A stretch of 64,000 nt of DNA from NCBI RefSeq assembly GCF_000143415.4, contig NW_003314369.1:310001-374000 (forward strand), written 5' to 3'. Made by a program: the position numbers and the translations under genes. The notes beneath the pieces were generated by a model. That model was not told where the DNA came from, searched no databases, and saw only the letters and a program-made list of their open reading frames with translations. Shown piece by piece: positions 536 through 64,000 of the stretch; positions within the stretch are counted from its first letter, which is position 1, and the number at the start of each line of letters is the position of its first letter. This DNA comes from Selaginella moellendorffii (taxonomy: Eukaryota; Plantae; Lycopodiophyta).

Positions 536-2776
536 CTACAGATAAGTCAGCGGAAGCATGCGTCTCACAATGCGCTGCTCCCCATCGGTCATGTGGAGCA
601 AGTATTCAGCGCTCCCAACTTTCAACACATCTAGCAGTTTGTCGGCAGTGGCTTGGGTGAGAAACGGAAACAACTCGGAAGATAGCCCATACACGACTAT
701 GGTCCGGTTGGCAGCACCTTCAACAACGATACGATGCTCAGGGGAGCCGAGCTGTAAAATGATACCGAGCATAAAGTTCACTCCACCAACACCAGCCTCG
801 AGCTTTCCAACCGCTCTCCTCATCTTTGTGGAGTTGTTGCTTTCCCAGCGCTTCGCCTGAATCCCAATTGGACCGCCAGTGCTTGGGACAATGTTGTCCA
901 CGGCTTCCTGTCCAGGCTTGCACGTCAGCGCTCGAATGTGCTGCAGGCACTCGTTGATCAGGCCGCGCTCCAAGTTCCTATAAGTTGGCGAGAAGCCGTT
1001 GAAGTTGAGCCCCGCATCAAGGTCCACTGTGCCGGCTAGACCGTGAGGAACTTTTCCCAGCAGTTTTGACAGGAATGCTCCCAGCTTTATCTCTCCCGTG
1101 AACGTGGCATCGCCCGTGTCCCTGCGACACGCTAGCATCGCCAGTAGCAGCAGTAACCTGGTGACAATTTCCCCGCGGGGGCCCCCTGTTACCACTCCTT
1201 CCTTGCACATCTTGGAGAGCTCGCCGAGGACTTCGTTTAGTGTCACCTCCTGAAGCAAAAACCCTGCTGCGGCCGCCGCAAGAACAGGTTCTGCGGCATT
1301 CGAGACATGAAGCCGTCGCCGGTCGTCAGAAATCCAGCAAGCTGTCATCATGTGAGAAGCCACACTCGTCTCCGCTGCTTCGGACCATGACGCAACATCC
1401 AGGCCGATGGTACAGCCGAGAATAGCAATCACGGTTGCATCTGTTACTCCGCCAGAACAGTTGAGCTTGTCCACTGCAAGTAAACGTAAGCCCTTGAAAG
1501 TGTACCCTTTGTCCATAAAAGCTCGCCACAGGGGTCTTCCTAGGCGGAAGACGCTTTCTGGGGATCCGGACGAGAGATCCCCAGGCACAGCAGCAGTGGC
1601 CGTTAGCCAAAACGGCTTGAACAGTTTATAGTCTCGAGCCCGCACCTTTCTGGTGGGATCCATCGCCTTGGATGGCACGAAGTCCAATAGTCGCGAATTG
1701 GTACCAAGTACTAGAGCCCACAGACCAAACTCTGCTTTACCCAGGACCCGCCTCAGCAGTGTAAATGCCGTATCCATGCCACCCTCCAGTTCCAGCTCCG
1801 CCAGCTCGCTAGCCTCGTCAAAACAAAACAGGACCTTGAGGCGTTGATCCGGTCGTTGCGCAATACCATCGAAAGCAATACCATCCAAAGGCAAGTCTCG
1901 GAGAGCAGTCTTTAATGCTTCCCCAACAGCATTGTATGTGTGAGACTCTCTACTGAGGTACTCTGTCGTGCGTCTTTCAAACGTCCTGGGCAAAGCAGCA
2001 GCCTTTGCAGCTGCAGATGCTTCAAGACGCAATGTACAGGCTTGGAGTCGACTTGCTATGTCGTTCGCTACAGGAAAGCCACGGGTGGGATCCGTCTGGT
2101 CGAGGATCCAGCAATGAGGATCGCCACCTCCTTTGACATAATCCGCGAGAGCCTCAATGCTGGCGAGCAAAAGCGCAGCCATCCGCAGTACTGTTAGCTG
2201 CTTGCCTTGAGTAATCCATGCAGCCAAGTGTGGAGTCTGGCCGGGAAATCCGGAGTGGCTGGCCTTCATGCACGAAATGTAGATGATGTACAAGCCCTTC
2301 CGGTGGAGCTCAAAAGCCAGCCTTGACTTACCCCAGCCGCTACTCTGCACAATAGCAAACAACGGTGCCATGTAAGCGTTGCCGAGCGCCCAAGTCCAAT
2401 AATCCCTCTTGATTTTGGACCAAAGCTCTTCCAGTACGTCCTCGTCCTCAAGAGGATACTCGAAGAAGGCTGCTCGCGCTGCGTCCTGGCCAGCCACCTC
2501 GTCGACTGCTACTGCGCCTCTCATGTCAGTCGTGTTATCGTCACTTTGGTCGCCCTCCTCAATGGATTCCACAACAGCCATGAACTCCTCCTTATCACAA
2601 CATTCTGCCAGCCGATGTCGCTCGGGCCACACCAGCATGGCCGCGGTGGTGGCATATTCGCCGTATACAAATCGCTTCACCCACCTAGAAACACCGTGTG
2701 GGCTCCGGAAGTCTTCCGCAACTGGCAAGGTGAAACCCTGTGCAGCCTCGAAGATCTGCCTCGTTCGCCTCCCCAT
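536..2776 (-). CDS. Crinkler(CRN/CR)-like effector-family protein, copy 1: P-loop NTPase + C-terminal PD-(D/E)xK-type (REase-fold) nuclease, 746 aa, intronless, intact
   Basis: Single 746-aa ORF. Walker A variant AIVQSSGWGKSRL (nt ~2321-2350), Walker B VLFCFDEA (~1811-1830), sensor-like LVLGTN, GRPLW motif. C-terminal GPRGEIVTRLLLL helix and PGQEAVD..IGIQAK (D..QxK) nuclease-like motif (~851-909). GC- and CpG-rich relative to the flanks. Family assignment is by motif recognition only. Confidence 0.8.
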   Translation of the reverse strand: MGRRTRQIFEAAQGFTLPVAEDFRSPHGVSRWVKRFVYGEYATTAAMLVWPERHRLAECCDKEEFMAVVESIEEGDQSDDNTTDMRGAVAVDEVAGQDAARAAFFEYPLEDEDVLEELWSKIKRDYWTWALGNAYMAPLFAIVQSSGWGKSRLAFELHRKGLYIIYISCMKASHSGFPGQTPHLAAWITQGKQLTVLRMAALLLASIEALADYVKGGGDPHCWILDQTDPTRGFPVANDIASRLQACTLRLEASAAAKAAALPRTFERRTTEYLSRESHTYNAVGEALKTALRDLPLDGIAFDGIAQRPDQRLKVLFCFDEASELAELELEGGMDTAFTLLRRVLGKAEFGLWALVLGTNSRLLDFVPSKAMDPTRKVRARDYKLFKPFWLTATAAVPGDLSSGSPESVFRLGRPLWRAFMDKGYTFKGLRLLAVDKLNCSGGVTDATVIAILGCTIGLDVASWSEAAETSVASHMMTACWISDDRRRLHVSNAAEPVLAAAAAGFLLQEVTLNEVLGELSKMCKEGVVTGGPRGEIVTRLLLLLAMLACRRDTGDATFTGEIKLGAFLSKLLGKVPHGLAGTVDLDAGLNFNGFSPTYRNLERGLINECLQHIRALTCKPGQEAVDNIVPSTGGPIGIQAKRWESNNSTKMRRAVGKLEAGVGGVNFMLGIILQLGSPEHRIVVEGAANRTIVVYGLSSELFPFLTQATADKLLDVLKVGSAEYLLHMTDGEQRIVRRMLPLTYL

Positions 2777-3144
2777 AGTCCCTTTTTAGGGTACTTGGAA
2801 ATACTTTTAATGTCTCTTTAAAGCCTTACATTCAAACTACATTTTTAGAATGTTTTTTAAAATGTTTTCATAAACTTTTGTGGCAGTAGCCAACGCTCAT
2901 ACACAATTTGCAACTTTATTTTTCCCATATCCATTGCAGCCTAAAACAGCAAAGCCAGTCCCCTATTGCTTAAGCAAACCACATTGACCGTAGATATTCT
3001 GATGTTCTCTCAAGACACGTGGATGTCTTCTAGGCAGTAGAATTCTCGCAAATAGAAAGAAATTTTGATCTAGCAATTTGCAGCCAGCATTTTGTGTTAG
3101 TGATGTCCATTTTCATTTTAAAATGTGGTAACATCTGGGATGGT

Positions 3145-3947
3145 AGTGAATATACCTAGAATATATTGGATATTCTAGAATATTTTACCATCTAATGGTT
3201 GTTATTCATTTAGATTAATCTTGTATTTATAATTTATAAAATTTCTTAAACCCTTTCTAGTATATTCTTTTTTATTCTATCATCTAATGGTTGATATGCA
3301 ATAAGATTAATCTTGTGTTTATAAATTACAAACATGTTTATAATTTGATTAATTAGATTAATAATTAAGAATAACACTACTATTAAGCAAACCAAACATT
3401 GCTCCATGCAACACATAGCAATTTTTTCTTAATCTAGAAGAATGTAAAAATATGGTCAAAAAAGAACATAATCAGAAAACCTTACACGATCTAGACGAGA
3501 GATTTTGAGCTTGGCAGCTGCCACTGAAACCCACTACTGCTGTGAATTAGAAACCTTGTTGTGCAAGAAATCTGAGGTATCCCAAATCAGAAATATAGAT
3601 CCTTATATTTTTATTTACAATGTTCAAGGATGCTAATATGCTGCATGTAAGATGCAGCAAATGATGTTTGAAAAGAAAAATATTCAGCTTAATTAATACT
3701 TACTATTTCATGCTACTTCGTTTGCTTAATAGTTGTGTATTAACTATTATTAATTCAATTGACAAATAGAAGTTAATAATGATAAAATGTTTTAATTTAT
3801 AAACACAGGATTAAAATATACCATTAGATAGTAGAATAAACTAGAATATACTTAGAAGTGTTTACAAATTATAAATATACAAGATTATCTAAATGAATAT
3901 TAACAGAATATCCCAGAATTTCCAAGCATATTCTAAGCACATCCACT
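3145..3947. mobile_element. AT-rich foldback / MULE-like non-autonomous element with ~240-bp imperfect inverted arms
   Basis: 3145-3395 aligns to the reverse complement of 3715-3947. Shared blocks include tattcatttagat, aatcttgta, tatattct, atctaatggt, tgtgtttataaatta and actattaagcaaac. No TSD identified. Confidence 0.55.
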
Positions 3948-3966
3948 TAACTAAAACACACTATAA

Positions 3967-4798
3967 TTTCAGTCTCTCTCCACCTAGCTAGCAATGATAT
4001 GGCATGATTACATGGCACTTCTCTCTTTCCATTTCCAATCACTTTAACTTAGACCAAAGTCTCTTTCAGAGGACAGAGAAGGGAGAAAAGAGGGTTCTTT
4101 TCCTTTGCATCCAATGTCAACCAGTGTGTATGTATCTCTTTGCTTTGCTTATCAGGATTGGTAGACTTTGGGATACCCTCTTCTCTAGGGGGTTTTAGAT
4201 TCTTCTCTGGAGTGTAATTGATGGTTGACCCAAGCTGCAGCAGTAGGAGCAGCTAGATTGGAAGTGCTCTTTTTTTTTGCTCTCAAGAGGTAGCAATAAT
4301 GATCATATGGAGGTTTCTATAAGTTTGTGAAGCTTAGTGGTACTGTTAGCTTTGACATTATGGAATATGGGCATGCTCCTCATCTTTGCACAGCCTGGAG
4401 CTCATAACTATTGCTACATAGTCTTCTCCTTTTGGATCATCCTTAGTTTTATTTTTCCAATGGATGCCTTGCAAGCTTGTAAGCATGCTCTTAGGGATCC
4501 ATCGAAACTTCACAAGTGGATGGATGATGATCCTTGCTCAGCTTTGTCATCATGGAGAGGAATCAAATGTGGTGGAGATAACCATGTTGTTGTCTCATTG
4601 TTCAAGTTCTTTTCTTTCTCTGTGAAGAACAAACAATGGAATTTTTTTTTTCCAAACTCTAGGACATCAAAGAAAGTGCCAGTCAAAAGCCAAGAAAGAC
4701 CACAGTCGTTGGACGGACAAATGCAGACAGGAGTGGAAAGAGAGAAGTGCCATGAAATCATGCCACATCATTGCCAGCTAGGTGGAGAGAGACTGAAA
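3967..4798. mobile_element. Pack-type TIR element (65-bp TIRs) carrying a host gene fragment
   Basis: 3967-4031 equals the reverse complement of 4734-4798 with 3 mismatches in 65 bp. The interior holds an LRR N-cap fragment. No clear TSD. Confidence 0.7.
4460..4590 (+). pseudogene. Captured fragment of a plant LRR receptor-like kinase/protein: LRR N-terminal cap (LRRNT_2-like)
   Basis: MDALQACKHALRDPSKLHKWMDDDPCSALSSWRGIKCGGDNHVV matches the plant cap pattern ALxxxKxxLxDP..LxxW...DPC...WxGVxC. No LRRs or kinase follow. Confidence 0.75.
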
Positions 4799-5114
4799 CA
4801 GGATGGTACAATATATATCACCATAAAAAACAGAACAATATCTGTTCAGTTAATGAAACTCTACCCTAATAAGAATAGTGGTTGTTGGTTATTTTGTGTC
4901 AGTTTTGATTTATCTGTAACATTAGAATCATCTAGGTTCTTGGAGTATCTGTATTCATTGTGTTCTTCTATTAATATTTTTTTTAATGAAAAATAAATGT
5001 TCAATTTGATTAATAGTTTATGCTTTGTTATAATTGTAATATTGTAAATATAGATGAAAATATTATGATTTACCAAGCAAGTAAATATTTGATGGATACA
5101 AACCTTAAATATTC

Positions 5115-6549: not shown

Positions 6550-7794
6550 CCATTTACATCATAATCCCATCTTTGAAAGACTAAGCCATCTGTCCATGAA
6601 TGGTCATCCTTTGACCACAGCTTAGCACCCTTAAGATGCCTAAAGACATAGGGAACACCCTCCCCCAATACCCCTTCATTTGTCCCCATCAAGTCCTTCT
6701 TCATCCATAGTAGTGCTCATAAACACTACCACTAAGTCAAGGCTTATAGGCCCAACCACTAAGTCCCACTGTCCTTTGGGACTTCCTCACCATGTGACAA
6801 TAACTACACTAGAGGATTACTTTTCTTCCTTTCCATAATCTAGGATTTTAAAACAACGTTTTGGAACATTATAGCTTTACGTAAGCTCTATGGGTACTCT
6901 CCCCATCTTTCACTTTTAAGTGCTTTAGCAATAGAGCTAAAGCGAGGTTCCATTGAGCCATGCCAGGGATCTAAGTAGGTAGTGCCACTTATACTAGAAG
7001 CATTGACCATTCAATCTCTTGTGGGTGCTAAAGCTAGCTTTTGAACATTTCACCAAGCTACCCCACTTATCAGTCTGTATTCACTTTAGTTTGGGACTTG
7101 AATTTAGTCTTGAACTCAGATTTGGTCTCGGTCTCGGTCTTGTCTCAATCTCCATCTCAGATTCCATATCAAACTCCATCTCAGGTCTATCTCGAACTCT
7201 ATATCATGTCCATCTCGGACTCCACCTTGGGTCCATCTCGGACTCCATTTTAGATCCATCTTGGACTCCATCTTGTATTCATCTTAGACTCCATCTTGGA
7301 TCTATCTCAGACTCCATCTCGAACTCCATCTTGGTCCATCTCAGACTCCTTTTTGGGTCCATTTCGGGTTTATCTCAGACTCCATCTTGAACTCCATCTT
7401 AGTCTATCTCGGACTCCATCTTGGGTCCATCTCGGGTCTATTTCAAACTCCATCTTAAGTCCATTTCGGACTCTATCTTGGATTCTATCTTGGGTCCATC
7501 TCGAACTCCATCTTGGGTTCATCTTGGACTCTATCTTGGGTCCATTTTAAACTCCATCTTAACATTTCCATGTATTATGTATTGGTCTTTTTATATCCCT
7601 TTTCTAAAAACTCGCTTATTGCTTATTTCGTGTTTGTTCCTTGACTATTTCATTGAGAATTTCACTCCCGCTCTTAACTTTTCAAGTTAGAGATTTTAGT
7701 CCAAATGTGTTATGCTTGTTTGAATTCTACTTCGGCCACTACCATGTAGCACCCTTTTGGCTCCACTTTGGGGCTTAGGGATTTATGTCTCATA
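6550..7794 (-). mobile_element. Family-B LTR fragment (minus orientation)
   Basis: Contains the family-B 12-bp tandem array (ggactccatctt) and ends tgtctcata, the reverse complement of the TGTGAGACA LTR start. Confidence 0.7.
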
Positions 7795-10450
7795 GAAGAA
7801 TCATTAATGATCGATATAATTTAAATTTAAATTCAATAAGGAATCAACAACTTCCATATCGATCACTAACTCTTTCTTTTGCATAGTTAGTACAATTTAT
7901 AACTAAATCACTTTTCAAGAAAATATTAAAGCTCAACCCCTACTAAACAATTTTGTCTAGAACATAACTAACCCGACTTACCACTCAGTTAGTTTGAACA
8001 TTAACATAGTTACTAAATAAAAAATGAACGAATGCTAATGATACAAAGGTAATATTAAACTATCAACACTATCTTCATTTAGACTAATGAAACAAAATGT
8101 TAATATCCAATAAACTCAACTAATCACTAACCATTTGTATCACTATAGATAGAAAATCCAACTTCCTCAATATGCTTATGGAGTAACATTTTGCCTCATT
8201 CCAATCTCAACATTAACAATGTTAACATCAAAGCATCACTTCAATGTTTTTAACACCAAAACAAAACTAGAAAAAAGCAAGAGTGAATCTTTAATAACCA
8301 AATCAATTAAAGGTTGAAGATACTTGATTCAATATTCAAGACCAAACCTTCAACAATATTCAACTATAGATAATATATCATTAAGGAGTGATTCACTATG
8401 TCTAATACTCAATAAAATCCAACATCATGGAATAAATACAACCAAATAATATCAATAAAGATGGATTAAAAATCTAATATAAAGAAACTATATAAGTTTA
8501 ACAATATGATCCTCTACAACACCATCCTGTAAAACAAACCTATCACCACTAAATCATCATGAAGTGAAGCAAATATCATCAACCCTTGACAAAGTTTACA
8601 AGCAATCATTAGTTGCAATACAACCAATAATCACTCTTTAACTTGCTGCATAAAACCCAAATACCAAATTCACATCATTAACTTATATATTTTTTTAAGA
8701 GAAAAGTAATAAAACAACATAAAAGATCATAGATAAGTATGGATAAAATAACTACTCAAATCCAATTAAACCACAATAAGTTCATTAACACATATAGCCA
8801 ATAGCTCTAAACATGACCGAAGAGGTTAGCGATATATAATTAACACTCAACTAAAACTAAAGTGAAGGCTATGAGATGGATTTATGTAGGGATACAACCT
8901 CCTAATAAATAAGGCTAATTTTTAAGACTCAATCAACTTCCTCTTATTTATAATTTCATATAGGTTCACCTTAGCATAAATTCTTATGACCCAACAATAT
9001 GCTTAAGCGTCTAACAACATGCCCATATAACTAGCATCCAACACTAACATCTATTATGCTAATGAATATTTAAAATTTGATCATAAAATTCTTCAATCAC
9101 TTTCAAGATTCAATATAAAGCTAAAACACTAACAAGAAAAATGCCATAAAAGTTTAAAATTTAAAGAAATCTCTTCATCACTCAATATAATAATGCCACC
9201 TTCATTAATATAACTGCTAGTAATGTCAATGCTTTAACCACACCTTTACCATCCAGTGAGGTTTTAGAAAGTTGTAGCATTCATTTGCTATAGCTTATTG
9301 GTGAATTCATTAGTATTTGGAATAAATTATTAGGCAAATCATTAAAGAACCAAGGTACCAACATAATAGATCTATTTCGAGAATCTAGTCAAAGTTATTA
9401 TAATGTTACTTTATATAAGTAAATTAGGGTTCCAAGGATCTGTAGTGACAATATATCTAAATTTCATCCTATGATCACATGCACTATAAGTATGGCATTT
9501 ATATTGCATTTTGTTGAATTTAATTGGCACTTAATACTCATATAAACCTTTGAAAGAATAATGTGGGTTAACTCATAGTGTTGCTCAAGTGATAATCAAG
9601 TCATTGTGATATTTATATCATATCTATATGATCATGAGTGATGTGTTTATAGTCAAACAAAGTAGTTAATAATAAAGCTAAGGGATAAATGGGGATAAAA
9701 TAGCCACTAAAAGCTCTTTTATAAAGTAATTACCCAGGATGCACTATATATAGTATTAGAGCAAATGGCACAGGTTCAATTTTGTAGTGCATATGATCAT
9801 GGGATGAAATTTGTATATACTTTCATTGTGAATCCTTATAACCTTAGGGGATAAATAGGGATAAAATAACCACTAAAGGCTTTGTCATTAAGTAATTTCT
9901 CCTTTTGTAATTAGGTTAACGGGAGAGAAATAAAGTGTATTATACTTAATAAAATCTTACAACCGACTTGCATTGTAATTAGGATTANNNNNNNNNNNNN
10001 NNNNNNNNNNNNNNNNNNNNNNNNNNNNNNNNNNNNNNNNNNNNNNNNNNNNNNNNNNNNNNNNNNNNNNNNNNNNNNNNNNNNNNNCTACTTAAACTAA
10101 TAGATTAATCCTTACAATCTTTATTACATCAACTCATAATCCTGTCTAAAAAGGATCCACTAGTTCTAGGACGAATAACTACTATTCACCACTCATAATA
10201 AACCCAGGGGAAATTTACTTTTACCCACGATAATATGGAAAACCATTGATAGGCTAACCTTAAGTTGCTAATATGCCTCACTCACAAACTCAAGTGCAAA
10301 CTTGTATAAATTGTACATCTTAAATCCATTTTATGAGCCCAAGTAAAAGCTCAAATAATATAGCACGAAAAAGGAACCAAAATCCTTACCTATGGAACAT
10401 ATGAGAAGCTATAGGAACCAAATGTGAGCCCACTTGCGTATGCAACAAGA
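7795..10450 (-). mobile_element. Old degenerate internal region of family-A LTR element
   Basis: Reverse complement matches parts of 54700-57920 (e.g. tcttgttgcatacgca, atatcgatcatt, caagtatctt, gtgattcactcttgcttttttcta). Confidence 0.55.
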
Positions 10451-14685: not shown

Positions 14686-14785
14686 NNNNNNNNNNNNNNN
14701 NNNNNNNNNNNNNNNNNNNNNNNNNNNNNNNNNNNNNNNNNNNNNNNNNNNNNNNNNNNNNNNNNNNNNNNNNNNNNNNNNNNNN

Positions 14786-16780
14786 CGAAAGAATTTGTCA
14801 CGAGTTCTTTCAGATATTCTTTCCTTACTACCACAATAGTAGAAGGTCAGTATTATTGGTCCCTTTTTTAGTCTTCGCCTAAGTTAGTTGAGAAACTTGT
14901 CTTCACATGTGCACTTGACTAAATTAACATAAGGATGGAATTCCTAAATGCTATTAGTCAAGTATATTTGACCTAGTTAAAGAAATTTATTCATTGACTT
15001 ACATTTGCTAGCATTGGGAACCCCTGTGATATTGAGCTTGGTCCCTTAATATTTGATAGATAATAACTTACTGTGTCTAGCAAACACCATTGCTATTATG
15101 CACCTTATGTTAGTTCCATTTAGTCCTAATTGCTATTTAGTGAAAGTGTCTAGATTTACTAATTTGCCATATCTATAGAATGTAAAGATTGTCTTGAACA
15201 CAATGGTGTTGGTCCCGTGTCAAAATTCACAATCTAATGCCATTCCATATTTAGTAAGTTTGGAGTTAATTCTAGAGACTAATGTGAGACACAAATCCCT
15301 AAGCCCCAAAATGGAGCAAAAAAGGTGCCATATAGTAGTGGTCAAAGTGGAAGTTCAACAAACGTAACATGTTTGGACCAAAGCTCTAACTTGAAAAGTT
15401 GAGAGCGGGAGTGGAACTCCGAACAAAGTGCTCGAAGAATGAGAACAAAATAATCAGTGAATAAGTCTCTAAAAAGGAACACAAGAAGGACTGACACGTG
15501 ACAAGTGTCGTGACACATGGAACTGTTGGGATTGAGTCTAAGATAGAGTCTGATAAGGAGTCCAAGAACAAATCCGAGATGGAGTCTAAGAAGGAATCCA
15601 AGATGGAGTCCAAGAAGGAATCCAAGATGGAGTCCAAGAAGGAATTTGAGATGGAGTCCAAGAAAGACTCTGAGATGGAGTCCAAGAAGGAGTCCAAAAT
15701 GGAGATTGAAACTAAAACCGAGACCAAGACCGTTGGAAAGTCAAAAGTGGGACTAGAACTCCAAACAAAGCACTCGAGGAATGAGCATGAAGCAATCGGT
15801 GAATGAGTCTTTAAAAAGGGACACAAGAAGGATTGATATATGGCAAGTGTTATGACACATGGAAGTGTCATGAACAAATTCAAGATGGAGTCTAATATAA
15901 ACTAAAGATGGAGTTTAATATAAACCAGAGATGGAGTCTGATATGGACCCAAGATGGACTTGAGATGGAGTCTGAGATAGACTTAAGATGGTGTTTGAGG
16001 TTAAGTCAAAGACTGGGTCCGAGGTCGAGTCCGAGGTCGAGTCCGAGGTCAAGGACAAGACCAAGACTAAGACTGAGACTAAGACCAAGACCGAGACCAA
16101 GATCAAGACTGAGTCTGAGTTTGAGTTTAAATTTGAGGGTGCAAGCCCAAAGCAATCGTTTCCCAAACTTTGGGGGATTTAATCAGCTCTAAAAGTATAG
16201 TAGGGGGGAGGACTTCAGTGGAGTTAGTTTGGCCAGAAAGAGTTAGTGTGATCAAGGAAGGTTATACTCACATAGTGGGTGATGATATAACTATTAAAAA
16301 GTCCAAGGATAGAGTAAACATGGACAAATAAGTGGGGTAACTTAGTGAAATGTTCAAAAGCCTGTTTTAGCTCCTTTAGGGGATTAAATGGTTGATGCTC
16401 CCAATCTAAGTGTGGGTGGCACTACCTACTTGGATACCTAGCATGGGTCATTGAAACTTCATTTTAACTATATAGCTAGGGTACCCAAGGGTGAAAGGTG
16501 GGGAGAGTATTCATAAGTCTCATGTAAGGCTATGGTATTTCAAAATGTTATCCCAAAGTCCTGAACTATGGAAAGGAAGAAGAGTAATCCTTAGTGTAAT
16601 AGATTGATATGTTAGTGGTACCTTCAGGGTGTCTATTGCGGGATTGAACACATGGACCACTTGGCCCAAGTGCAATGGCTGAGTGGCATAGGTGTCATTG
16701 ATCAGGCTAATATGCCCTAAGTTAGGAATGGGACTTAAGGAGGTTGTGAGTGAGACTCTTCCAAGTGGTCAAAAGTGTGT
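14786..16780 (+). mobile_element. Family-A LTR 5' half (14786-15282) interrupted by a family-B LTR (from 15283)
   Basis: Homology to 53535-54038, then TGTGAGAC directly after agagactaa. The same junction occurs at 29574/29575. Confidence 0.7.
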
Positions 16781-16937
16781 GTAAAGAACTAACTCCTTGA
16801 GGTGTCGTAAGCTAAAGAAACCCCGAAAGCATAACCGAAATGATAAAGAATTCATTAGATGGGACTGAGTCTGAGATCAAGTCCAAGACCGACTTTAAGA
16901 CCAAGTTCGAGATAGAGTCCAGGATCGAGTCTAAGGC

Positions 16938-17756
16938 NNNNNNNNNNNNNNNNNNNNNNNNNNNNNNNNNNNNNNNNNNNNNNNNNNNNNNNNNNNNNNN
17001 NNNNNNNNNNNNNNNNNNNNNNNNNNNNNNNNNNNNNNNNNNNNNNNNNNNNNNNNNNNNNNNNNNNNNNNNNNNNNNNNNNNNNNNNNNNNNNNNNNNN
17101 NNNNNNNNNNNNNNNNNNNNNNNNNNNNNNNNNNNNNNNNNNNNNNNNNNNNNNNNNNNNNNNNNNNNNNNNNNNNNNNNNNNNNNNNNNNNNNNNNNNN
17201 NNNNNNNNNNNNNNNNNNNNNNNNNNNNNNNNNNNNNNNNNNNNNNNNNNNNNNNNNNNNNNNNNNNNNNNNNNNNNNNNNNNNNNNNNNNNNNNNNNNN
17301 NNNNNNNNNNNNNNNNNNNNNNNNNNNNNNNNNNNNNNNNNNNNNNNNNNNNNNNNNNNNNNNNNNNNNNNNNNNNNNNNNNNNNNNNNNNNNNNNNNNN
17401 NNNNNNNNNNNNNNNNNNNNNNNNNNNNNNNNNNNNNNNNNNNNNNNNNNNNNNNNNNNNNNNNNNNNNNNNNNNNNNNNNNNNNNNNNNNNNNNNNNNN
17501 NNNNNNNNNNNNNNNNNNNNNNNNNNNNNNNNNNNNNNNNNNNNNNNNNNNNNNNNNNNNNNNNNNNNNNNNNNNNNNNNNNNNNNNNNNNNNNNNNNNN
17601 NNNNNNNNNNNNNNNNNNNNNNNNNNNNNNNNNNNNNNNNNNNNNNNNNNNNNNNNNNNNNNNNNNNNNNNNNNNNNNNNNNNNNNNNNNNNNNNNNNNN
17701 NNNNNNNNNNNNNNNNNNNNNNNNNNNNNNNNNNNNNNNNNNNNNNNNNNNNNNNN
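16938..17756. other. Assembly gap (others of ~100 N at ~9988, ~14686, ~19181, ~22538)
   Basis: Runs of N. Confidence 0.99.
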
Positions 17757-18114
17757 ATAGTAGGGATAGTGAGGTCTAGGAATCAGTCTTGAAAGAACTT
17801 TCAATGGGTGCTTTCAAACTGACTTGAGGTTGAGACTGGGGTCGAGGGGCCTTGAGTGGGAGTGAGCATGGACTCGAGTGGTGCCAGAGGGGCCACCCAA
17901 GGAACTGCTCAAGAGCAACTCCCACTCCCGAAAGGGAAACCAACTGCAATGCTCTCAGCTTATGTGGAGTGGTGCCCCACTTGAGTACCTTGTGGCTCAT
18001 TAGTCCTTGCCCTTCCTAGGGGCTTGGGCCTTCCCTTTGGGATGGAAGTGGGGGGGTAAAGGTACCCATACCGGGCCATTAGGCCACGGTAAATATATAG
18101 GTAATATGGTAGAT

Positions 18115-21100
18115 AGAAAGGGGTTAATAAAGGAATGATTTTGGGATCTTGAGAATAGTAGAAAGTTTTCTTCAAAGGGTTAAGGATGTGATCTATATAA
18201 ACATTTCATTTAGCAAACTGGCTAATGTGATTATGGTAAACAACTACAATTGGGATCATAGGAATAATGGAAACTCCTAGACAATAAAGGAGTCATAAGA
18301 TTATCCTTATATAGTTGAAAATAGTATTCAAAAAATTAAGACTGAAGTTAGTGACTATAAGAGGTCAAATACAGATGAGGATATATATCCTTGAAATGGT
18401 AGCTAAAGCTACATCTAAGAGATACTGGAACAACCCAAGGAGTTAAAAATGTACTTAAAGGATGAATTGATATTTTCATTATAAGGAAAGATAGTTTTAA
18501 GGGGTAAAGGTAATTTATATGGAATAAAGAATAATAAGTGTTAGAGTAACACTTGTAAAGATGGTCTTTGTGAGTAGGACATGAATACAAGAAATTGTAT
18601 TTTAGTGAGCTGACATCTTAAAAGTAGTTATAAGGCTAGGACTTTACGAGTTGTCGGATTAGCAAAGTCCCAAAGCTGGATGACTTAGTGGAGTCAAGGA
18701 ATGGTCTTAAAAACTTAGTGAAAGCTTTTGGATTGAGGTGGGTTATATCCTACAAAGGACTGGGAGGATCATGAGATCCAAGTATGAGAATAGTGGGTAT
18801 CTCATTAATGGCAAAATACCTATACTAAAATTGTGGGGAAAGGTGTTTACAGAAGAAAACAACTTTCGCAAAGGGTTGCGTGTGAACACTATATTGCAAT
18901 GCTAACTAATAATTGGCATAAGAAATGACTATTATGATTTTTGCAAGACTTAGATATAAGTGGGAAGTGTCGTGAGGGTAGGTTCATAGAGCCAATGGTG
19001 TAGAGACACTAAATGTTTCAAGGGATGACGCCTTGAAATCAAATTGGTTGGTTTATAAGAACCCTTTGCCAAAGGAATCTTAATAGAAATGAGATTGGCA
19101 TAGCCTAAGCTAAAATATATGCCATTCAAGTGTGTGGACCCAAATAATGATGGAGGTGTGAAAGCACTAATAATGAATTANNNNNNNNNNNNNNNNNNNN
19201 NNNNNNNNNNNNNNNNNNNNNNNNNNNNNNNNNNNNNNNNNNNNNNNNNNNNNNNNNNNNNNNNNNNNNNNNNNNNNNNNGTAAAAGAAAATACTTATTA
19301 TCAAAAAAGTTCATCATTAGGACACCAAAACACTGTTAAACACCTAAGAAGTGGTGTTTAGTATCATGAGGGCATTAGATTAAGCCCCAAAGACTAATTC
19401 CCTAAAGAATAATGGGTAAGAGATGCTTTCTAATGTTTAAAGTAGTGGAAAGCTAGAGACTAGAGAAATTTATCTATCCAAAATTGGACAAAGCCAAAAA
19501 GGATTTTAGCTTGACTAGTGAGGGGAACACAAAGGCCCATGAATAACAACATTAATCCTAGTGTGTGGAATTATAAGGTGAGTATATCTAGATTAAAGAA
19601 CCACTCTTTAGACCATTGGGTAGGTTCATCTTTCAAAATACTTGTTAAGGCATAATAGAAAGTGCAAAGTTTTCTTCCTAGCTTAGAAGAAGAATAACCG
19701 AAGGGAATATGTAAGGCCGAAAGTAAGTAATAAAGGAATAAAACTAAACTATAGGAATCAAAAGGTATATCCAAGGGTGCTTATATAAATTAGGTGTGAA
19801 TAATTAAGTGGATGCTCGAAAATGTTGCTATTGGTAATTGTGGTGCCATAAAAAGTCTAAAATGTAGAATTGCACATGTTAGATTTTATAGCAATTAGAA
19901 AGCTTGCATAAAGATAAGCTTTGGCAAGCCAAAGGACAATGTCCCTTCAAGGTTCCTAAAGACAATTCTAGCTAGTTTAGTACCTAGAAAGACAAATGTA
20001 AATGGTTCATAGGAATGCGTGAAATCAAAGTGGTACAGCAAAAATATGGTATTGAAGTTTGCTATGAGGTGAAGCTATCAAAATTGAGATACTCATTTTT
20101 CGGTGGTCATGAACTCTTAGTAAGGAGACTGGCTTGGGGACACCTTTAAGTGGAGGATGCCTCAGAGTCATGATTCATAGTTAAATTACTTAGTGTGAAA
20201 GTTAAGTATATCTAAACACCCTGATGCAAGTGGCACCAAGAACATAGTGAATGAAATAGAGACACTCAATCTCAATTGCTATGAACCTTGGTCAGAAGGG
20301 TTAGCTTAGGTGCACCGCCAAAAGTGGGGGATGCCCCCGGGGTCATGGTCAACAACTTAAAGGTCTAAAAGACATAATATGGCAAACTTGTTAAAGTGTT
20401 AATGTGAGATTACTAGGTGATTTTATAACTAAACAAAGATAAAATCCTTTTCAAAGTAGGAAATAAAGTTTCTAGTTCAAAGTGTTAATTTGAATTATTA
20501 GTAATGGTGTGACTTAATCAATGTGACTAAGTGGAAAAGACACATAAGGGAAATGGGCTATAGCAATGCAATGGTATTATAAGTCCAAGAAATTAGTATT
20601 TAGAGAAGAACTTATGAGTTGGTTGCAAAGTTGGGCAATAAATAAAGCATACAGCAAAAAATGCTAAAGAGACTTACTAAGAATGGACACCTCTTGAACT
20701 TAGCAAATCAAAGCCTTTCCTATGAAATTGAAAAAAATACCTCAAAGACGGAGATAATGATCCTATATTATTTAGTGCAAACAATTAAAGGATAGAAGCA
20801 AATAACTAATGGCCAAAAATCGGCCATAGGAAGTTCTAAATGTATAGTAGGGATAGTGTGTAGATCAAGTCAACCAATCTAAAGCACAATTTAACTTTTA
20901 TTTGGTGCTTGTCTTTGTTCTACACCTGGTTTGGGTCTAAGCCCAAGTTCCACACTATATTAGTTGGTAGAGTATTTATATCCTTACATTATGCCACGGT
21001 ATGCTGAAATAGTGTCAGACTTCATTTAGCTTCATTTTGCATGCTAGTCTTAGCATTGGGATGCTGGAAGTTTTAGGACTATTCTAACGTTACTCTATAC

Positions 21101-22370: not shown

Positions 22371-22807
22371 TAAGACTACTCTGGAAATTTTAGTCGCTTA
22401 CAAATATTTAAAAAAACTTGCTAATAAGTAACTTCTGATACCTACAATCATATTTATGACATATTATTAGTCCATGCTCCTATTTTTTTGCTCCTTTCAT
22501 TGTTGGGTCCTCAAGAGTTTGGTTTTATCACTTTATTNNNNNNNNNNNNNNNNNNNNNNNNNNNNNNNNNNNNNNNNNNNNNNNNNNNNNNNNNNNNNNN
22601 NNNNNNNNNNNNNNNNNNNNNNNNNNNNNNNNNNNNNCTTCTCTCTAGACTCAGGAGATGGTTTACATTCATGAATTACATACAAGGAAGCATAAGTTGG
22701 ATTTGGGAGTCACTAGCCTATACATTGTGATGAACTTTCTTTTGATTGTATGATTCAATTGAGCTATTAAGAAATTTCTATAACAGTGACAACCATAAAG
22801 ACAGCCA

Positions 22808-23646: not shown

Positions 23647-23982
23647 ATTCGAACACATGGAAATCTCTACTAACCATGAAAGATCAGTGATTTGCTTAAA
23701 GCCTAGCATTAGCTCAAGTACGCTTGCTTTTTTATCCTCTTTGTAGCCACTTCTGGCCTGTTCCCAGTGGTCTTATGCTTCCAGATGGGAGCAAACAGGC
23801 CAAAACATGTATTATTATTGTTTGAGTGCAAGTAAAATCACAGCTATGGAACAAACGAAAGTGGTGGTAGGTTTAACATTTTCTTCTGTTGAGGTTTGGG
23901 CTGAAGTATGTAATAGGATGGTGTGAGTGTCAGAATTTTCACATGCTAAAATTTGAATGTTCACTGCCACTCTTCTTATTCT

Positions 23983-24094
23983 TATATATACATATATATA
24001 TATATACATATATATATACATATACATATATATATACATATACATATATATATATACATATACATATATATATATACATATACATATATATACA
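23983..24094. repeat. (TA)n/(TATACA)n compound microsatellite
   Basis: Directly visible. The paralogous site at ~63166-63178 has only a short TA run. Confidence 0.95.
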
Positions 24095-24103
24095 TTCAAA
24101 TTC

Positions 24104-51745: not shown

Positions 51746-53209
51746 TATAAGCGACTAATTTTTCCATGCTACTTTAGTCACTTAACCACACCTTTGACCA
51801 CTTGGAGGAGTCTCATTCATAACCTTCATAAATCCAATTTAGAACTTGGGGCTTGCTAGCCCCGAGAATGGCATCCATACCACTTAACCTTTGCACTTAA
51901 TCTAAGTGTTCCACATGTCCAATCCCATGACTGACACCCAAAGGTACCACTGACATATCAGCCTGTTACGTTAAGACCATGTCTATTCACCTTTGTCACA
52001 TTTATGATCTAATACCACCTACATCACAGTCCCATTAGGTCATCTGTCTATGAGTGGTCATCCCAAATCCACTCTTTAGCATCCTTAAGATGCCCATAGA
52101 CATGGGGAATAGTCTTCCCCAATATCCCTTTTTCGGTCCCCACCAAGTCCCTTTCTGTCAATGGCTGTGTTCGCCAACACTACCATTGCATCAAGGCACA
52201 CAGGTCCAACCACTAAGTCCCCTTGTTCTCTGGGACTTCCTCACCATATGACTGGATCTTTGGTCACTACACTAGAGGATTGCTCCTCTTCCTTTCCACC
52301 ATCCAAGACTCTAAAACAATATTTCGGAACATCATGGCCCTACACGAGCTTCATAAGTACTCTCCTCACCTTCCACCTTTGGGTGCTTTAGCCATGGGGC
52401 TAAAGTGAGGTTCCATTGAGCCATGCCAGGTATCCAAGTAAGTAGTGCCACCCATGTTTGGACTAAGAGTATCGACCATTTGATCTCCCGGGAGAACTAA
52501 AGTTGGCTCTTGAACAATTCACCAAGTTACCCTGCTTATCAATCTGTATTCACTCTAGCCTTGGACTTCCCAATGGTTATCTCATTACCCAACACCTAGG
52601 CATACCCTTCCTGGGCCAAACTGGCTCCATTGGGTCCAACCCCCACACTCTCCCTACTATACTTTTGGAGGAACCCCCTGGAGCCCCCCCCCCCCCTCCC
52701 CCCCCAAGGGGGACGATCACTTTGGGATTTCACCTAAAAGCCTGTATTAGTATTTGGACTCGGACTCGATCTTGGGTTTAGACTCGGACTCGCTCTCAAT
52801 CTTGGTCTCGGTCTCAGTTCCATCTTGGGTCCATCTCGGCATCTCGAACTCCATCTCGAGTCCATCTCAAACTCCATTTGAACTCCATTTTGGACTCCAT
52901 CTTGGGTCCATCTCGGACTCCATCTTGGACTCCATCGTGGGTCCATCTCAGATTCCATCTCAAGTCTATCTCAGACTCAAACCATGTGTCATGTTTTGAT
53001 CCTTTTGTGTCCCTTTTTTAGAGACTCCTTTATTGCTTGCTTTGTGCTCATTCCTCAAGCACTTCGTTGGGAGTTCCTCTCACACTCTCGACATTTTGAC
53101 TTGGAGCTTTTAGTCCATATGTGTTACACTCATTTGGCTTCCGCCTCAACCACTACCACGTGGCACCTTTTTGGCTCCTCTTTGGGGCCTAGGGATTTTA
53201 TGTTTCACA
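51746..53209 (-). mobile_element. Family-B solo LTR with perfect TSD
   Basis: Flanked by CTCTA at 51741-51745 and 53210-53214. Reverse complement of the family-B LTR. Confidence 0.85.
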
Positions 53210-59500: not shown

Positions 59501-60754
59501 TGGTGCATTTCTCACATAGTGTGAGTACCGTGAACTTTTTCTGGAGTTGTTTCCTTGGCGGTATTCTAGACTTGAGTATGCATCAACGAGGATGTCGATC
59601 TTCCCTAGGGGGGGAGAGTGTCGCGAATGTGATTTCGGGTATCGAAAGTTACCTGTCGACTAGTCCTTACGGACACTCTTACCTTACTACCACAATGGCA
59701 GGAGGTCGGTATTGCTGGACCCGTTATTAATCTCCGCCTAAGCTAGTTGAGAAACTGGTCATCACATGTGCACTTAGACCGGAAAGGCACTAAGGAAGGA
59801 AATCCTAAGTTGTCATTTAGTCAAGCAGACTTGACACGGTGATGAGAAACTCATGATGTTGACTTGCACTTGCTAGTGTTAGGAACCCCCGCGATATTGA
59901 GCTTGGTCCCTCAACATCGCTAGATGATAACTTACCGTGTCTGCCAAACACCCTCGCTATCATGCCCTTTGTGTTAGTCTCATTTCGGTCCCAAATGCTA
60001 TTTATGGAAAGTGTTTAGATTTGCTCATTTGGCATATTTATGGAATGTAGAGATTGTCCTGAACATAATGGTGTTCGTCCCATGTCCAAATTCGCAATCT
60101 AGGGACATTCCATATTTAGTAAGTTTCGAGCTTGTCCCAGAGACTAACTCCTGATACTAAGGGAGGCTTGGGGTGAAAGCCCAAAGCGTGTGTTCCTTAA
60201 GGGGGGGGGGGCTATAGGGGGTTCCAAATGTATAGTAGGGATAGTGGGTAGATCGGGCATGGCTGACCAACCTGAGGCATAGTCTAGCTCCCGCTTGCAT
60301 GCCTGTCCTTGTTCTGCGTCCGACTTGGGTCTAAGCCCAAGTTCCATTCCATGCTAGCTGGTGGAGTACCCATGTCCTCGCGTTAGACCACCGGTATGCC
60401 AAAATAGCGCCAGACTCTGTTTGGCTCCGTTTTGCATGCTGGTCTTGGCATTGGGATGGTGGTTGCTCCAGGACTGTTCCAAGTCACTCCGGGCTCCTGC
60501 CCCTTCGCTCCTTGGGCTTCATGCTCGAGAGTTGCTCCGTGGTTCGGTTCTGTGACTCCTCGGCTCCATGCTTGGGAGTTTGGCACCGTTCCTTTGTTCA
60601 GTGGCCCAAGGCCCTGAACCTCAGGTTCTTGTGGACACGTGGCATGGACACGTGGCATCCGTCACGTGGCACAAAGAGGGTTTAGGTTCTGCTTCGTGGT
60701 GTTATCCTATGGTAAATCACCATAGGATAAAGGGTCAAAACCATGTGCGCTACA
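53510..60754 (+). mobile_element. Full-length family-A non-autonomous (LARD-like) LTR retroelement
   Basis: LTRs 53510-54645 and 59619-60754 (1136 bp each, TG..CA, about 35 differences by eye). TSD AGTGT at 53505-53509 and 60755-60759. PBS TGGTATCAGAG at 54648. PPT agggggggagag at 59607-59618. No long internal ORF. Confidence 0.93.
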
Positions 60755-61825
60755 AGTGTGACTTAGTTAAGGTGACAAAGTGAAAAACAATACAATAGTA
60801 TGGTGAGTCCAAGAAAGTAATCTCTAAAAAAGACATATAAAAAGGGCTATAGATAAAGCCCATAATAGAAAATGCTAAAGAAATTTACTAGAGGTGAACA
60901 CCCCTTTGGGTTTGGCAAAGTAGAGCCTTTGCTATGAATGCTCCAAGGATGGAAATAATAATCCTATGTTACTTGGTGTAACAATCAAAGGATAAAAGCA
61001 AAAGTTTAGTAGCCAAGAATAGATTATAGAAATTATTGAAAGGAATCCAAATAATAAATTTAAGTATGGAATATTTATGTGGTGGATGCTAACAAATTGT
61101 GGGAAAGAAAATATATTTCTAAGGATGGGATTCCTAAATACTCCTATTGGCGAAGATGAAAACTCCAAAAAATGGAGTGGCAAAATAGCCAAATGATAGA
61201 AATGATATCCCTAACACAAATTATGGATAAATGGAATTTGTGGCATGAAATAAAAAAGAAAATGATAGTGCCCTTAAGTACAAAACTTCTTAAGATAGAA
61301 AAATAGAGTTTACACAACATCAAAAGCACCAAGGAAATTGATTTGAAAAATTAATATCAATTCTATAGTATAATGGTTATGATGATAAAGCCTAAGACTA
61401 CTCTGGAAAATTTAGTCACTTACAAATATCTAAAAAGACTTGTTAATAGGTAACTTTTGATATCTACAATCATATTTATGACATATTATTAGTCCATGCT
61501 CTTATTTTTTTGTTCTTTGTTTGTTTGGGTCCTCAAGAGTTTGGTTTTATCACTTTATTTAACAGTTTAAAGCCTTGAAACTTGGGATTTAATTTGCTGC
61601 TTTTAGCATATATGTTCAAAAGTTAAGTTCCATTACATTAAAACCATATATGCTCCTTCTCTCTAGACTCAGGAGATGGTTTACATTCATGAATTAAGTA
61701 CAAGGAAGCATAAGTTGGATTTGGGAGTCACTAGCCTATACATTGTGATGGACTTTCTTTTGATTGTATGATTCAATTGAGCTATTAAGAAATTTCTATA
61801 ACAGTGACAACCATAAAGACACCCA

Positions 61826-62806
61826 CAGGGATAACCACTGAAGCTAAACAGATCAGCTTTGCATGGCTAATTGTTATCAGGTAATTACGTTTCATGACAC
61901 TTAGCAGATTAAATCCATGCCAATAATTGGAGGCAGACCATTGGCAAATGTACATGATCCAGTGGTCTAGGATGTTGTTCATTGGTTGATTAGGTGAGAA
62001 GGATTGGTTCCAGGATTTGAATCTAGAGCTTCCAATGTAGCATGACAAATTGTTGGACAAGCTGAAAGTCCTGGGCTAGATTTGGGAACCATCTTGGGAG
62101 AGGCCCCAAGTCGTCATCTGGATTTTGGTGGCAGAATGGAATTACAGGCAGCTGTCAGGGTTGCAATGGCAAGAATGTGAAAATCTGAATAACCCAGAGT
62201 ATGATTGAGAGAATGACCACCTGAAGCTTCAAGAGTGGTTGTAGAAATTGAAGCATTGTGGGGATACTAAGAATGTGGACAAGGTGCCATTCGCCTCAAT
62301 CTTTCTCAAAGATCTGGCATTGGAGTGGTTTCATAACTTGGAACCCAGAATCTTTCCAGACTGGGAGCAGTTCAAAACAATGATCACAGACACATTCACG
62401 GTTTAGAATTTCCCTTCAACAAACTTTGTGATCTTTGTTATGACTGTCAACGTCAAACTCTCTAAGCTTTTTAACACCTTGTGGTTGCAAGCTCGGTATG
62501 AGGTGGTGGGTGTTAGTCAATGTTATGGAGCAGCATTGCCATCAACCATGGCTGGAGATGTGCTCAAACAAAGCAGCTATGGTAGCAGACCTTGGTGGGA
62601 GAGTACATTTCTGTGGATATGGACTCAATCTCAAACAATGAGGAGATCTTGGCTTGAGAAGCTAGAGGAATGTCTTCCAGATCAGACTCTTTGACGGATG
62701 ATCTCATTACTTTGACATGGATTTAATCTGCCAAGTGTTCATGAAACGTTTTTTAAAAACTTTGGCCATGCAAAGCTGATATATTTAAACTTGGTGGTTG
62801 TCCCTG
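61826..62806. mobile_element. Paralog of the inverted-repeat element with gag-like fragment, upstream of copy 3
   Basis: Arms 61826-61920 and 62716-62806. Interior ~62250-62400 reads DKVPFASIFLKDLALEWFHNLEPRIFPDWEQFKTMITDTF. Confidence 0.55.
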
Positions 62807-63433
62807 ATTCGAGCACATGGAAATCTCTACTAACCATGAAAGATTTGCTTGGCCTAGCATTAGCTCAAGTACACTTGCTCTTTTATCCTCTTTGTAGCCA
62901 CTTCTGGCCTGTTCCCAGTGGTCTTATGCTTCCAGATGGGAGCAAACAAACCCCCAAAACATGTATTATTATTGTTTGAGTGCAAGTAAAATCACAGCTA
63001 TGGAACAAACGAAAGTGGTGGTAGGCTTAACATTTCTTCTGTTTAGGTTTGAGCTGAAGTATGTAATAGGATGGTGTGAGTGTCAGAAGTTTCACATGCT
63101 AAAATTTGAACGTTCACTGCCACAAAATCTCATTATCATAAACTTCCCTTTTGTTGGACTCTTCTTATATATATATACACCTTTATCACCTACAATCAAG
63201 CAGTGTTGTATTTCCACCCTAAAAAGGGCCGGGCCACTGCTACTGGGAGTGACGCGCATTTCCTTGTCCTCCTGCCACTGGGGAACCCTAGCCCCGACCC
63301 AGAAAGAAGAGAGCTTCAGAGACGCCCTAGCCACTGGAGACGATGCGGACTCCAAAGCTTTTGTTGGATCACGTTGAATGCGCCTTCCGGATCCCAGGCA
63401 CTTATCCACCGAGGGTTAGGGTTGCTCAACACC

Positions 63434-64000
63434 ATGGGGAGACGAACGAGGCAGATCTTCGAGGCTGCACAGGGTTTCACCTTGCCAGTTGCGGAAGACT
63501 TCCGGAGCCAACGCGGTGTTTGTAGGTGGGTGAATCGATTTGTATTCGGCGAAGATGCCGCCGCCGCGGCCTTGCGGGTGGGAGCTTGGCCCGAGCGACA
63601 TCGACTGGCAGAATGTAGAGATAAGGAGGAGTTCATGGCTGTTGTGGAATCCATTGAGGAGAGCGACCAAAGTGACGATGACACGACTGACATGAGAGGC
63701 GCAGTAGCAGTTGAAAAGGTGGCTGGCCAGGACGCAGCGCGAGCAGCCTTCTTCGAGTATCCTCTTGAGGACGAGGACGTACTGGAAGAGCTTTGGTCCA
63801 AAATCAAAAGGGATTATTGGACCTGGGCGCTCGGCAACGCTTACGTGGCACCGTTGTTTGCTATTGTGCAGAGTAGCGGCTGGGGTAAGTCAAGGCTGGC
63901 TTTTGAGCTCCACCGGAAGGGCTTGTACATCATCTACATTTCGTGCATGAAGGCCAGCCACTCCGGATTTCCCGGCCGGACTCCACACTTAGCTGCATGG
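63434..64000 (+). CDS. CRN-like NTPase-nuclease gene, copy 3 (5' part; runs off the window)
   Basis: ATG at 63434, MGRRTRQIFEAAQG...AIVQSSGWGKSRL..., no stop to the window end. The frame is also open upstream back to 63110. Confidence 0.8.
   Translation, partial: MGRRTRQIFEAAQGFTLPVAEDFRSQRGVCRWVNRFVFGEDAAAAALRVGAWPERHRLAECRDKEEFMAVVESIEESDQSDDDTTDMRGAVAVEKVAGQDAARAAFFEYPLEDEDVLEELWSKIKRDYWTWALGNAYVAPLFAIVQSSGWGKSRLAFELHRKGLYIIYISCMKASHSGFPGRTPHLAAW

Follow-up and report, generated by a model that had tools for sequence, protein, structure and literature searches.

A window of 64,000 nucleotides from the lycophyte Selaginella moellendorffii (the whole stretch of DNA analysed here, GL377673.1:310001-374000 of assembly GCA_000143415.2) contains a cluster of three intronless, nearly identical genes, which we read, on balance, as recent local duplicates within an old, resident and clustered family of ATP-gated nucleases, of conflict or defence type, whose evolution is one of birth and death. 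A first-pass annotation of the sequence had proposed a birth-and-death cluster of Crinkler-like nucleoside triphosphatase (NTPase)-nuclease genes in a land-plant genome, possibly acquired horizontally. The land-plant host was borne out (copy 1 is a 100% match to SELMODRAFT_428878), and tblastn together with profile hidden Markov model (HMM) scans recovered the three genes as described, except that one of them is interrupted:

536-2776, minus strand: copy 1 (P0001), an intact intronless open reading frame (ORF) of 746 amino acids
24244-26478, plus strand: copy 2, an interrupted copy, for which the database model (P0004) splices round the interruption
63434-64000, plus strand: copy 3 (P0003), of which the first 189 codons lie within the window

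The genes were read as single ORFs. On the scaffold, copy 3 is an intact single-exon ORF of 743 amino acids. Copy 2 is 97.7% identical to copy 1 in DNA and 95.8% in protein, and its reading frame is broken by a single premature stop and altered by in-frame indels of 6 and 12 bp, without a frameshift. Copies 1 and 3 keep all predicted catalytic residues, and copy 1 also keeps all near-invariant residues of the family bar one conservative change. The cluster is real and more than a product of chance, and it is one of birth and death, as had been supposed, in which two intact genes stand beside an interrupted one and old remnants.

The copies are products of local segmental duplication, followed by insertions of transposable elements (TEs), and not of transposition, because their shared flanks differ in extent and neither terminal inverted repeats nor common discrete ends were found around them in an inverted-repeat search of the copy 2 flanks and in flank comparisons. 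The flanking features are:

1-535, minus strand: downstream flank of copy 1, in the duplicated unit, 96% identical to 26479-27032 in inverted orientation
26479-27011, plus strand: downstream spacer of copy 2, in the duplicated unit
27012-27340, plus strand: old remnant of a divergent paralogue, covering profile positions of about 295-421 in more than one frame, with a TE abutting its end
21732-24243, plus strand: upstream flank of copy 2, common to copies 2 and 3 only (89-91% identical), CpG-poor, with a gap (22538-22637), a TA-rich microsatellite and a telomere-like array
60751-63433, plus strand: upstream flank of copy 3, the partner of 21732-24243

The unit common to all three copies begins 3 bp 5' of the ATG and runs for at least 3.1 kb. 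Copies 2 and 3 additionally share about 2.5 kb upstream, whereas copy 1 instead shares 180 bp upstream with a 96% identical paralogue (P0002) on scaffold GL377649.1; the shared flanks span 3.1 kb to more than 5 kb and are different for each pair of copies. Copies 1 and 2 are inverted, head to head and 21 kb apart, and copies 2 and 3 stand in tandem, 37 kb apart. Homology between copy 1 and copies 2 and 3 ends at 2777-2779, 24241-24243 and 63431-63433, exactly 3 bp before the ATG, and the upstream sequences are of two unrelated kinds, one shared by copy 1 and P0002, the other by copies 2 and 3. This sharp 5' edge could be a TE insertion, the edge of a conversion tract or the end of a unit. The remnant at 27012-27340 comprises about 100-150 codons with about 50% identity; counterparts follow copies 1 and 3 outside the window, and because the same remnant trails every copy, it was duplicated together with the gene. 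Only one of the two older remnants that had been reported thus lies within the window. A second cluster (L008, GL377649.1:607634-629847) consists of P0002 and an 814-amino-acid gene model, tail to tail (at least two copies), and shares 7 kb of the downstream region of copy 3 at 93% identity; it may represent either the other haplotype or a paralogous locus.

The flanks show further features of their own. Five tandem AAACCCT units of the plant telomere type are located at 24104-24138, 106-140 bp 5' of the start codon of copy 2; this array is the sole such site in the window, was reached in none of 100 shuffles, and may be a promoter element or the trace of a rearrangement. Telobox-like motifs (CCCTAA / AGGGTT) are found at most 25 bp from the ATG in all copies. 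A TA-rich microsatellite of the TATACA type lies at 23983-24095, about 150-260 bp upstream of copy 2, and a MITE-like pair of 45-nt inverted repeats (22808-22852 and 23602-23646, 749 bp apart) is present in the flank common to copies 2 and 3. An antisense ORF in the spacer (164-634; 111-159 amino acids) was judged spurious, because its bounds vary and its protein identity is below its DNA identity.

The architecture of the protein was derived from an AlphaFold2 model of copy 1 built on an alignment of 105 relatives (pLDDT 86.8, pTM 0.84); an earlier run on a six-sequence alignment reached a pLDDT of 37.5 and was discarded. All motifs listed in the first-pass annotation are present in copy 1, namely QSSGWGKS (amino acids 144-151), FCFDEA (317-322), GRPLW (413-417) and E536..D627..Q640-x-K642. 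The model shows an N-terminal part followed by an AAA+/STAND-like ATPase, a winged helix and a C-terminal domain, which correspond to the following segments of copy 1:

2387-2776, minus strand (amino acids 1-130): variable N-terminus, all helices, pLDDT 43-78, alignment occupancy 0.52
1577-2386, minus strand (amino acids 131-400): P-loop ATPase core with Walker A (144-151), Walker B (317-322) and T359
1193-1576, minus strand (amino acids 401-528): helical lid with G-R-P-L-W, then winged helix, with K437 and E496-P497
677-1192, minus strand (amino acids 529-700): predicted PD-(D/E)xK domain with E536, D627, Q640 and K642

The N-terminal region is helical and hydrophilic, and the ATPase core carries a modelled helical insert of about 125 amino acids between strand 2 and the Walker B strand. 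The winged helix is modelled as three helices and a beta-hairpin at about amino acids 427-492 and belongs to the most conserved block of the family (401-528, occupancy 0.97). The elements of the segment 529-700 (helix 534-554, strands 616-618, 628-630 and 637-642, helix 649-661, strand 670-675) have pLDDT values above 90 and follow the order alpha-beta-beta-beta-alpha-beta, with the Glu on the first helix, the Asp opening strand 2 and the QxK on strand 3; terminal helices follow this mixed alpha/beta domain in the model. From motif and topology, the segment 529-700 is quite probably a PD-(D/E)xK nuclease.

Foldseek searches against the PDB retrieved AAA+/STAND ATPases only (ORC1/Cdc6, CED-4, MuB, PAB2304, MalT, BrxC, Avs3, NLRC4, ZAR1 and SAMD9) at E 0.014-0.1; the matches to ORC/Cdc6, CED-4 and MuB (E 0.014-0.03) are weak, with a probability of 0.9-0.98 and a TM-score to the target of 0.3-0.45. 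Searches against viral structures gave generic P-loop matches only. No PDB sequence or profile matched the protein, no Pfam model matched the C-terminal domain alone, and no Pfam, NCBIfam or PADLOC model matched the family protein in scans of the protein, its two halves and its relatives, apart from faint Pfam AAA matches in 9 of 128 relatives (eight AAA_22 or AAA_16, one generic AAA). Neither the Pfam scans nor the model revealed LRR, WD40 or TPR repeats. Of the fold that had been anticipated for this protein, the AAA+/STAND-like ATPase was recovered in the model, with weak structural matches, as were the motif and topology of a PD-(D/E)xK domain, but no match to a nuclease structure was obtained.

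Conservation was counted in the alignment of 105 relatives (A3) and in a non-overlapping set of 64 relatives (A5), 169 in total. The near-invariant positions are K150, D320/E321, T359, G413-R414-P415, K437, E496-P497, G532/G535/E536, D627, Q640 and K642. The Walker A lysine (Lys150) is present in 95/95 sequences of A3 and 58/58 of A5, the Walker B pair Asp320-Glu321 in 100/101 and 63/63, and Thr359 in 102/103 and 64/64. Among the predicted nuclease positions, Glu536 is conserved in 99/103 and 62/62 sequences, Asp627 in 92/93 and 58/58, Gln640 in 76/91 and 52/58, and Lys642 in 80/91 and 54/58. The proposed NTPase is thus upheld by Walker A, Walker B and sensor residues that are near-invariant in the 169 relatives, together with the weak structural matches and faint Pfam AAA matches mentioned above.

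Base composition sets the genes apart from their surroundings. The copies have a GC content of 0.55 and a CpG observed/expected ratio (CpG o/e) of 0.81-0.85, compared to 0.40 and 0.36 in the rest of the window, which agrees with their earlier description as GC- and CpG-rich, and neighbouring host genes have similar CpG o/e values (0.72-1.04). The 0.5-kb spacer between gene and remnant is also GC-rich, with a CpG o/e of 0.99 after copy 1 (1-535); the downstream flank of copy 2 has a CpG o/e of 0.59, measured over 26479-27340 with the remnant included. Synonymous divergence (dS) between pairs of copies is 0.034-0.042, and the ratio of nonsynonymous to synonymous divergence (dN/dS) is 0.46-0.57 over the whole gene. 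By domain, dN/dS values of about 0.25-0.55 were obtained for the ATPase and nuclease-like domains, 0.16-0.44 for the helical lid and winged helix, and about 0.6-1.1 for the first 130 residues, which account for 19 of the 50 residues that vary among four near-identical copies.

An exhaustive search by HMMER, for which the profile was built from Selaginella sequences, identified 1220 representative proteins at E<=1e-3 and 428 at E<=1e-10. Selaginella itself possesses at least seven divergent subfamilies (25-56% mutual identity) on many scaffolds, one of them with 14 listed members plus RefSeq isoforms. The fern Adiantum capillus-veneris has relatives as well, among them two neighbouring genes on a 157-Mb chromosome (GOP47_0019032 and GOP47_0019033), and the closest relative outside Selaginella is a fern protein (about 30% identity, 201 bits). 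Named fungal relatives come from Calcarisporiella thermophila, Paraglomus occultum and Ascosphaera apis; another relative is found in the EukProt transcriptome GILK01, and further ones on eukaryote-type contigs beside split MCM, Piwi or kinase genes or retroelements. Word-based protein searches, whether started from the alignment or from the fern protein, contributed hardly any named relatives, no prokaryotic relative emerged when plasmids and phages were searched by tblastn, and a literature search by locus tags and GILK01 found no publication naming these genes. In one member, P0028 (SELMODRAFT_419024), an F-box domain (residues 138-173) precedes the C-terminal part of the family, and this arrangement may be either a genuine fusion or the product of a chimeric gene model.

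In a neighbour-joining tree (492 columns, 100 bootstraps), the window subfamily, its sister subfamily, a fern gene and another Selaginella gene formed one clade (98% bootstrap support), and a second lycophyte and fern clade received 100% support. In both clades, a Selaginella gene is nearer to a fern gene than to other Selaginella genes, and the simplest reading of this interleaving is that several paralogues predate the split of lycophytes and ferns. The family looks like a large eukaryotic one, old and resident in plants, and common to lycophyte, fern and fungi. A recent horizontal transfer into Selaginella, in line with the possible horizontal origin raised in the first-pass annotation, is not supported: deep Selaginella subfamilies interleave with fern genes, and the base composition is host-like.

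The likeness to Crinkler-type (CR) effectors lies in the architecture. According to PMC5289972, which reports Zhang et al. 2016, NTPase plus helix-turn-helix plus restriction endonuclease (REase) is the commonest C-terminal plan of CR effectors; the same account places CR proteins in land plants and free-living eukaryotes, describes some that have helical or DNA-binding headers and are believed to work within the cell, and derives the NTPase-REase pairs from prokaryotic transposon proteins. The window family has the same order of P-loop NTPase, winged helix and REase-like domain as that outlined there, the REase part being predicted from motif and topology, and it likewise consists of multi-copy, fast-turnover genes in transposon-rich DNA. 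In contrast to CR effectors, no ubiquitin-like header or LxLFLAK-type N-terminus was detected. Pfam includes a Crinkler N-terminal model, and this model matched none of 129 family members (the window protein and 128 relatives). Phytophthora CRN effectors were not among the matches of any search, no CR comparator having been included. The N-terminus, being helical and variable, speaks neither for nor against one of the alternative CR headers (helical, Myb-like and others). The domain order of the Crinkler reading stands, but no Crinkler-type header was detected, and membership of the window family in the CR class is not shown by a likeness of architecture.

Mobile CR-effector-like elements have also been described, e.g., Medea1 of Tribolium, which combines CR-NTPase8 and CR-REase7 (PMC11342252). 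As presented there, Medea1 is comparable in being a headerless ATPase and REase protein of a free-living eukaryote, and it comes from a selfish or conflict-type locus. The CR-REase7/CifB/Medea1 signature given in the same source, which consists of a His three residues past the catalytic Glu together with a Glu in the first strand of the core, is however absent in the window family: 60/103 sequences have Ala at the position three past the catalytic Glu, the window protein has Thr there, and strand 616-618 lacks a conserved Glu; nor were discrete element ends found.

The ORC/Cdc6-MuB-STAND ATPases (including Avs3 and the nucleotide-binding leucine-rich-repeat receptors, NLRs, of plants) are the best structural matches, albeit weak ones (E>=0.014), and share with the window family the Walker A, Walker B and sensor residues, a G-x-P-like lid motif and a winged helix after the ATPase. 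Plant NLR loci have the same clustered birth-and-death genomics. The window family differs from STAND defence proteins and NLRs in lacking LRR, TPR and WD repeats, in its predicted C-terminal nuclease and in the insert of the ATPase core, and from nuclease-armed STAND defence systems in that no PADLOC defence model matched it. With TnsC/TnsA of Tn7 and MuB of Mu it shares the pairing of an AAA+ ATPase with a PD-(D/E)xK nuclease (predicted here), and MuB (8xvb_A, probability 0.98) ranks with the best fold matches. In the window family, however, ATPase and putative nuclease are fused in one eukaryotic protein, TnsA and TnsC were not among the matches, and no transposase, terminal repeats or prokaryotic relatives were detected.

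If the predicted activities are real, the ATPase would bind and hydrolyse ATP and would probably oligomerise like its ORC/Cdc6, MuB and STAND look-alikes. The state of the ATPase might then gate DNA binding through the winged helix, and DNA binding might license cleavage by the C-terminal nuclease. The protein would thus be an intracellular, ATP-switched DNA endonuclease of conflict or defence type without a detectable delivery header. In Selaginella, its genes would turn over as segments are duplicated locally, inverted or in tandem, as copies become pseudogenes and as the nuclease site erodes, i.e. by the birth and death of host genes.

Several observations weigh against the reading of the three genes as members of a resident nuclease family. 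In P0002, and likewise in each of the four sister-subfamily members, one or two positions of the predicted nuclease tetrad are substituted although the ATPase motifs are intact, which suggests that nuclease activity is dispensable or selected against in part of the clade; outside the window clade these positions are almost never substituted, and the alterations would fit a costly predicted nuclease activity that was repeatedly lost or repurposed. Copy 2 carries a substitution at the near-invariant glycine beside the predicted catalytic Glu. The Foldseek E-values, which concern the ATPase only, are about 0.01, and no solved nuclease was matched by structure or profile in the whole-chain Foldseek search, which is dominated by the ATPase, or in the PDB sequence and profile searches. 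Over the whole gene, dN/dS between copies is no lower than about 0.5 and derives from few substitutions. The sharp homology edge before the ATG may mark the end of a mobile unit. Finally, absence of the family from seed plants is suggested by the named relatives, among which no seed-plant protein occurs, but it is not established, because only about 35 of 150 listed relatives were assigned to an organism.

The main rival, which we regard as possible if rather unlikely, is that a selfish mobile element resembling CR effectors is still amplifying in Selaginella and carries the genes as its payload; the ATPase-nuclease would then serve the element rather than the host, for instance by helping it to spread or by damaging cells without it. 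Intronless, multi-copy genes in transposon-rich DNA would be expected of such a payload, and so might the patchy occurrence of the family over lycophyte, fern, fungi and protist-like contigs, the homology edge with its two upstream contexts and the eroded nuclease sites of the paralogues; the origin of NTPase-REase pairs from transposons and the mobile elements described in the literature (PMC5289972, PMC11342252, in the accounts cited above) point in the same direction. The window copies, however, have no terminal inverted repeats or common 3' end, their shared flanks are specific to each pair, and they are clustered rather than dispersed. Their CpG is undepleted, unlike that of every surrounding TE, and the lycophyte and fern clades fit long vertical retention. 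One relative in another eukaryote (L004) lies between inverted repeats of about 0.5 kb; we rejected these as evidence of mobility, since they abut gag and protease ORFs and are probably the long terminal repeats of a neighbouring retroelement.

A different objection concerns the C-terminal domain, which may not be a nuclease: E..D..QxK could instead serve DNA binding or a contact between domains, and the protein would be an ATPase switch or scaffold. The lack of any fold or profile match to a nuclease and the paralogues that tolerate substitutions at the tetrad positions would be in line with this. We nevertheless think it unlikely, for the order and spacing of the residues and their placement on secondary structure match the PD-(D/E)xK core exactly, and each tetrad position is held in 83-100% of sequences in two independent sets comprising the 169 relatives.

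More doubtful still is the view of the genes as relics without function, recent duplicates in a family that is dying out, with ORFs open only for lack of time. The low dS among the copies, the whole-gene dN/dS, the interruption of copy 2 and the altered nuclease sites of close paralogues would agree with decay, and RefSeq XP accessions were seen for subfamily C but not for the window genes. On the other hand, three ORFs of 2.2 kb are still open (copy 1, copy 3 and P0002), dN/dS is about 0.2-0.55 in the enzymatic domains compared to about 1 in the N-terminus, CpG is retained, and copies 1 and 3 keep catalytic and near-invariant residues that are shared with relatives only about 25% identical. 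Recent horizontal acquisition from a fungus or oomycete, or misassembly of a contaminant into the plant scaffold, might account for relatives in early-diverging fungi (Calcarisporiella, Paraglomus) and in Ascosphaera, for a GC content far above that of the flanks and for named relatives that include no seed plant, but it is largely refuted and highly improbable, given that there is no close donor, that the nearest relative outside Selaginella is a fern protein of only about 30% identity, that the window subfamily groups with fern and other Selaginella genes, that at least seven deep Selaginella subfamilies occur on many scaffolds, that GC and CpG resemble those of neighbouring host genes, and that copies 2 and 3 are physically linked to a plant gene.

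This linkage bears on the contamination or misassembly considered in the first-pass annotation. The sequence is gap-free from 22638 to the end of the window and for 12 kb further, and copy 2, a Ty3/gypsy element, copy 3 and a plant O-fucosyltransferase (O-FucT) gene (PF10250), situated 10 kb past the window end, are joined on this uninterrupted stretch, which disposes of contamination. The window contains five runs of N, all in repeat DNA between copies 1 and 2 and none of them in or beside the ORF of any copy:

9988-10087: N run
14686-14785: N run
16938-17756: N run of 819 positions
19181-19280: N run
22538-22637: N run

Three of these gaps (14686-14785, 19181-19280 and 22538-22637) have flanks that align collinearly, on either side, with a further copy of the repeat in question, with partner intervals of 65, 160 and 96 bp, respectively, and continuity is therefore supported there. 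Two ORFs of more than 300 amino acids each (16812-17804 and 16840-17760) span the 819-N run and are artefacts.

The remainder of the window is rich in repeat DNA, in agreement with the TE context noted earlier, and includes a degenerate Ty3/gypsy element and many repeat copies:

4337-4996, plus strand: decayed plant leucine-rich repeat (LRR) receptor fragment (LRRNT_2, Pfam E 4.9e-05), next to copy 1
35910-40424, minus strand: degenerate Ty3/gypsy interior of chromovirus type (gag, protease, reverse transcriptase, integrase and chromodomain) in at least nine ORF pieces
7143-7560, 15530-15704, 29825-29968, 33861-34354, 42121-42313, 47541-47701 and 52840-52960: arrays of GAGATGGAGTCC

The fragment at 4337-4996 (GC 0.37, CpG o/e 0.13) is probably what is left of a decayed LRR-receptor gene. 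The unit GAGATGGAGTCC forms a 12/23-bp tandem array inside at least seven copies of one family of repeated elements, and this family, whose members show 66-88% mutual identity, occupies a large part of the window. A gene of 468 amino acids (L002, 16168-17738) with faint P-loop matches (AAA_16, ORC-CDC6-like) is situated 6-8 kb beyond the end of the window, between copy 3 and the O-FucT gene; as a candidate member of the family it was rejected, being unrelated by hhalign.

It is tempting to extend the reading of an old, resident family further, and to suppose that lycophytes and ferns keep an ancient, LRR-less arm of immunity or cell death, in which a STAND-like ATPase is fused to a REase-type executioner as a counterpart of bacterial STAND-nuclease defence. 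The N-terminus might then sense or adapt, the altered paralogues might act as regulators or decoys, and seed plants might have lost the system; we regard this extension as speculative and, in its full form, improbable.

Proteins resembling CR effectors have been reported from land plants before, and the enzyme activities considered here are predicted ones. If our reading is true, the idea of a recent microbial entry of these genes into the plant would be corrected. Selaginella and ferns would then possess a large family of ATP-switched nucleases without an entry in any of the protein-family libraries searched, and the module plan of pathogen Crinkler effectors and of bacterial STAND-nuclease defence would exist in plants as resident, vertically inherited genes. 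The family would then offer a tractable plant system for how a host tames toxin-like nuclease modules, with a natural series of paralogues whose predicted active sites are either intact or altered.

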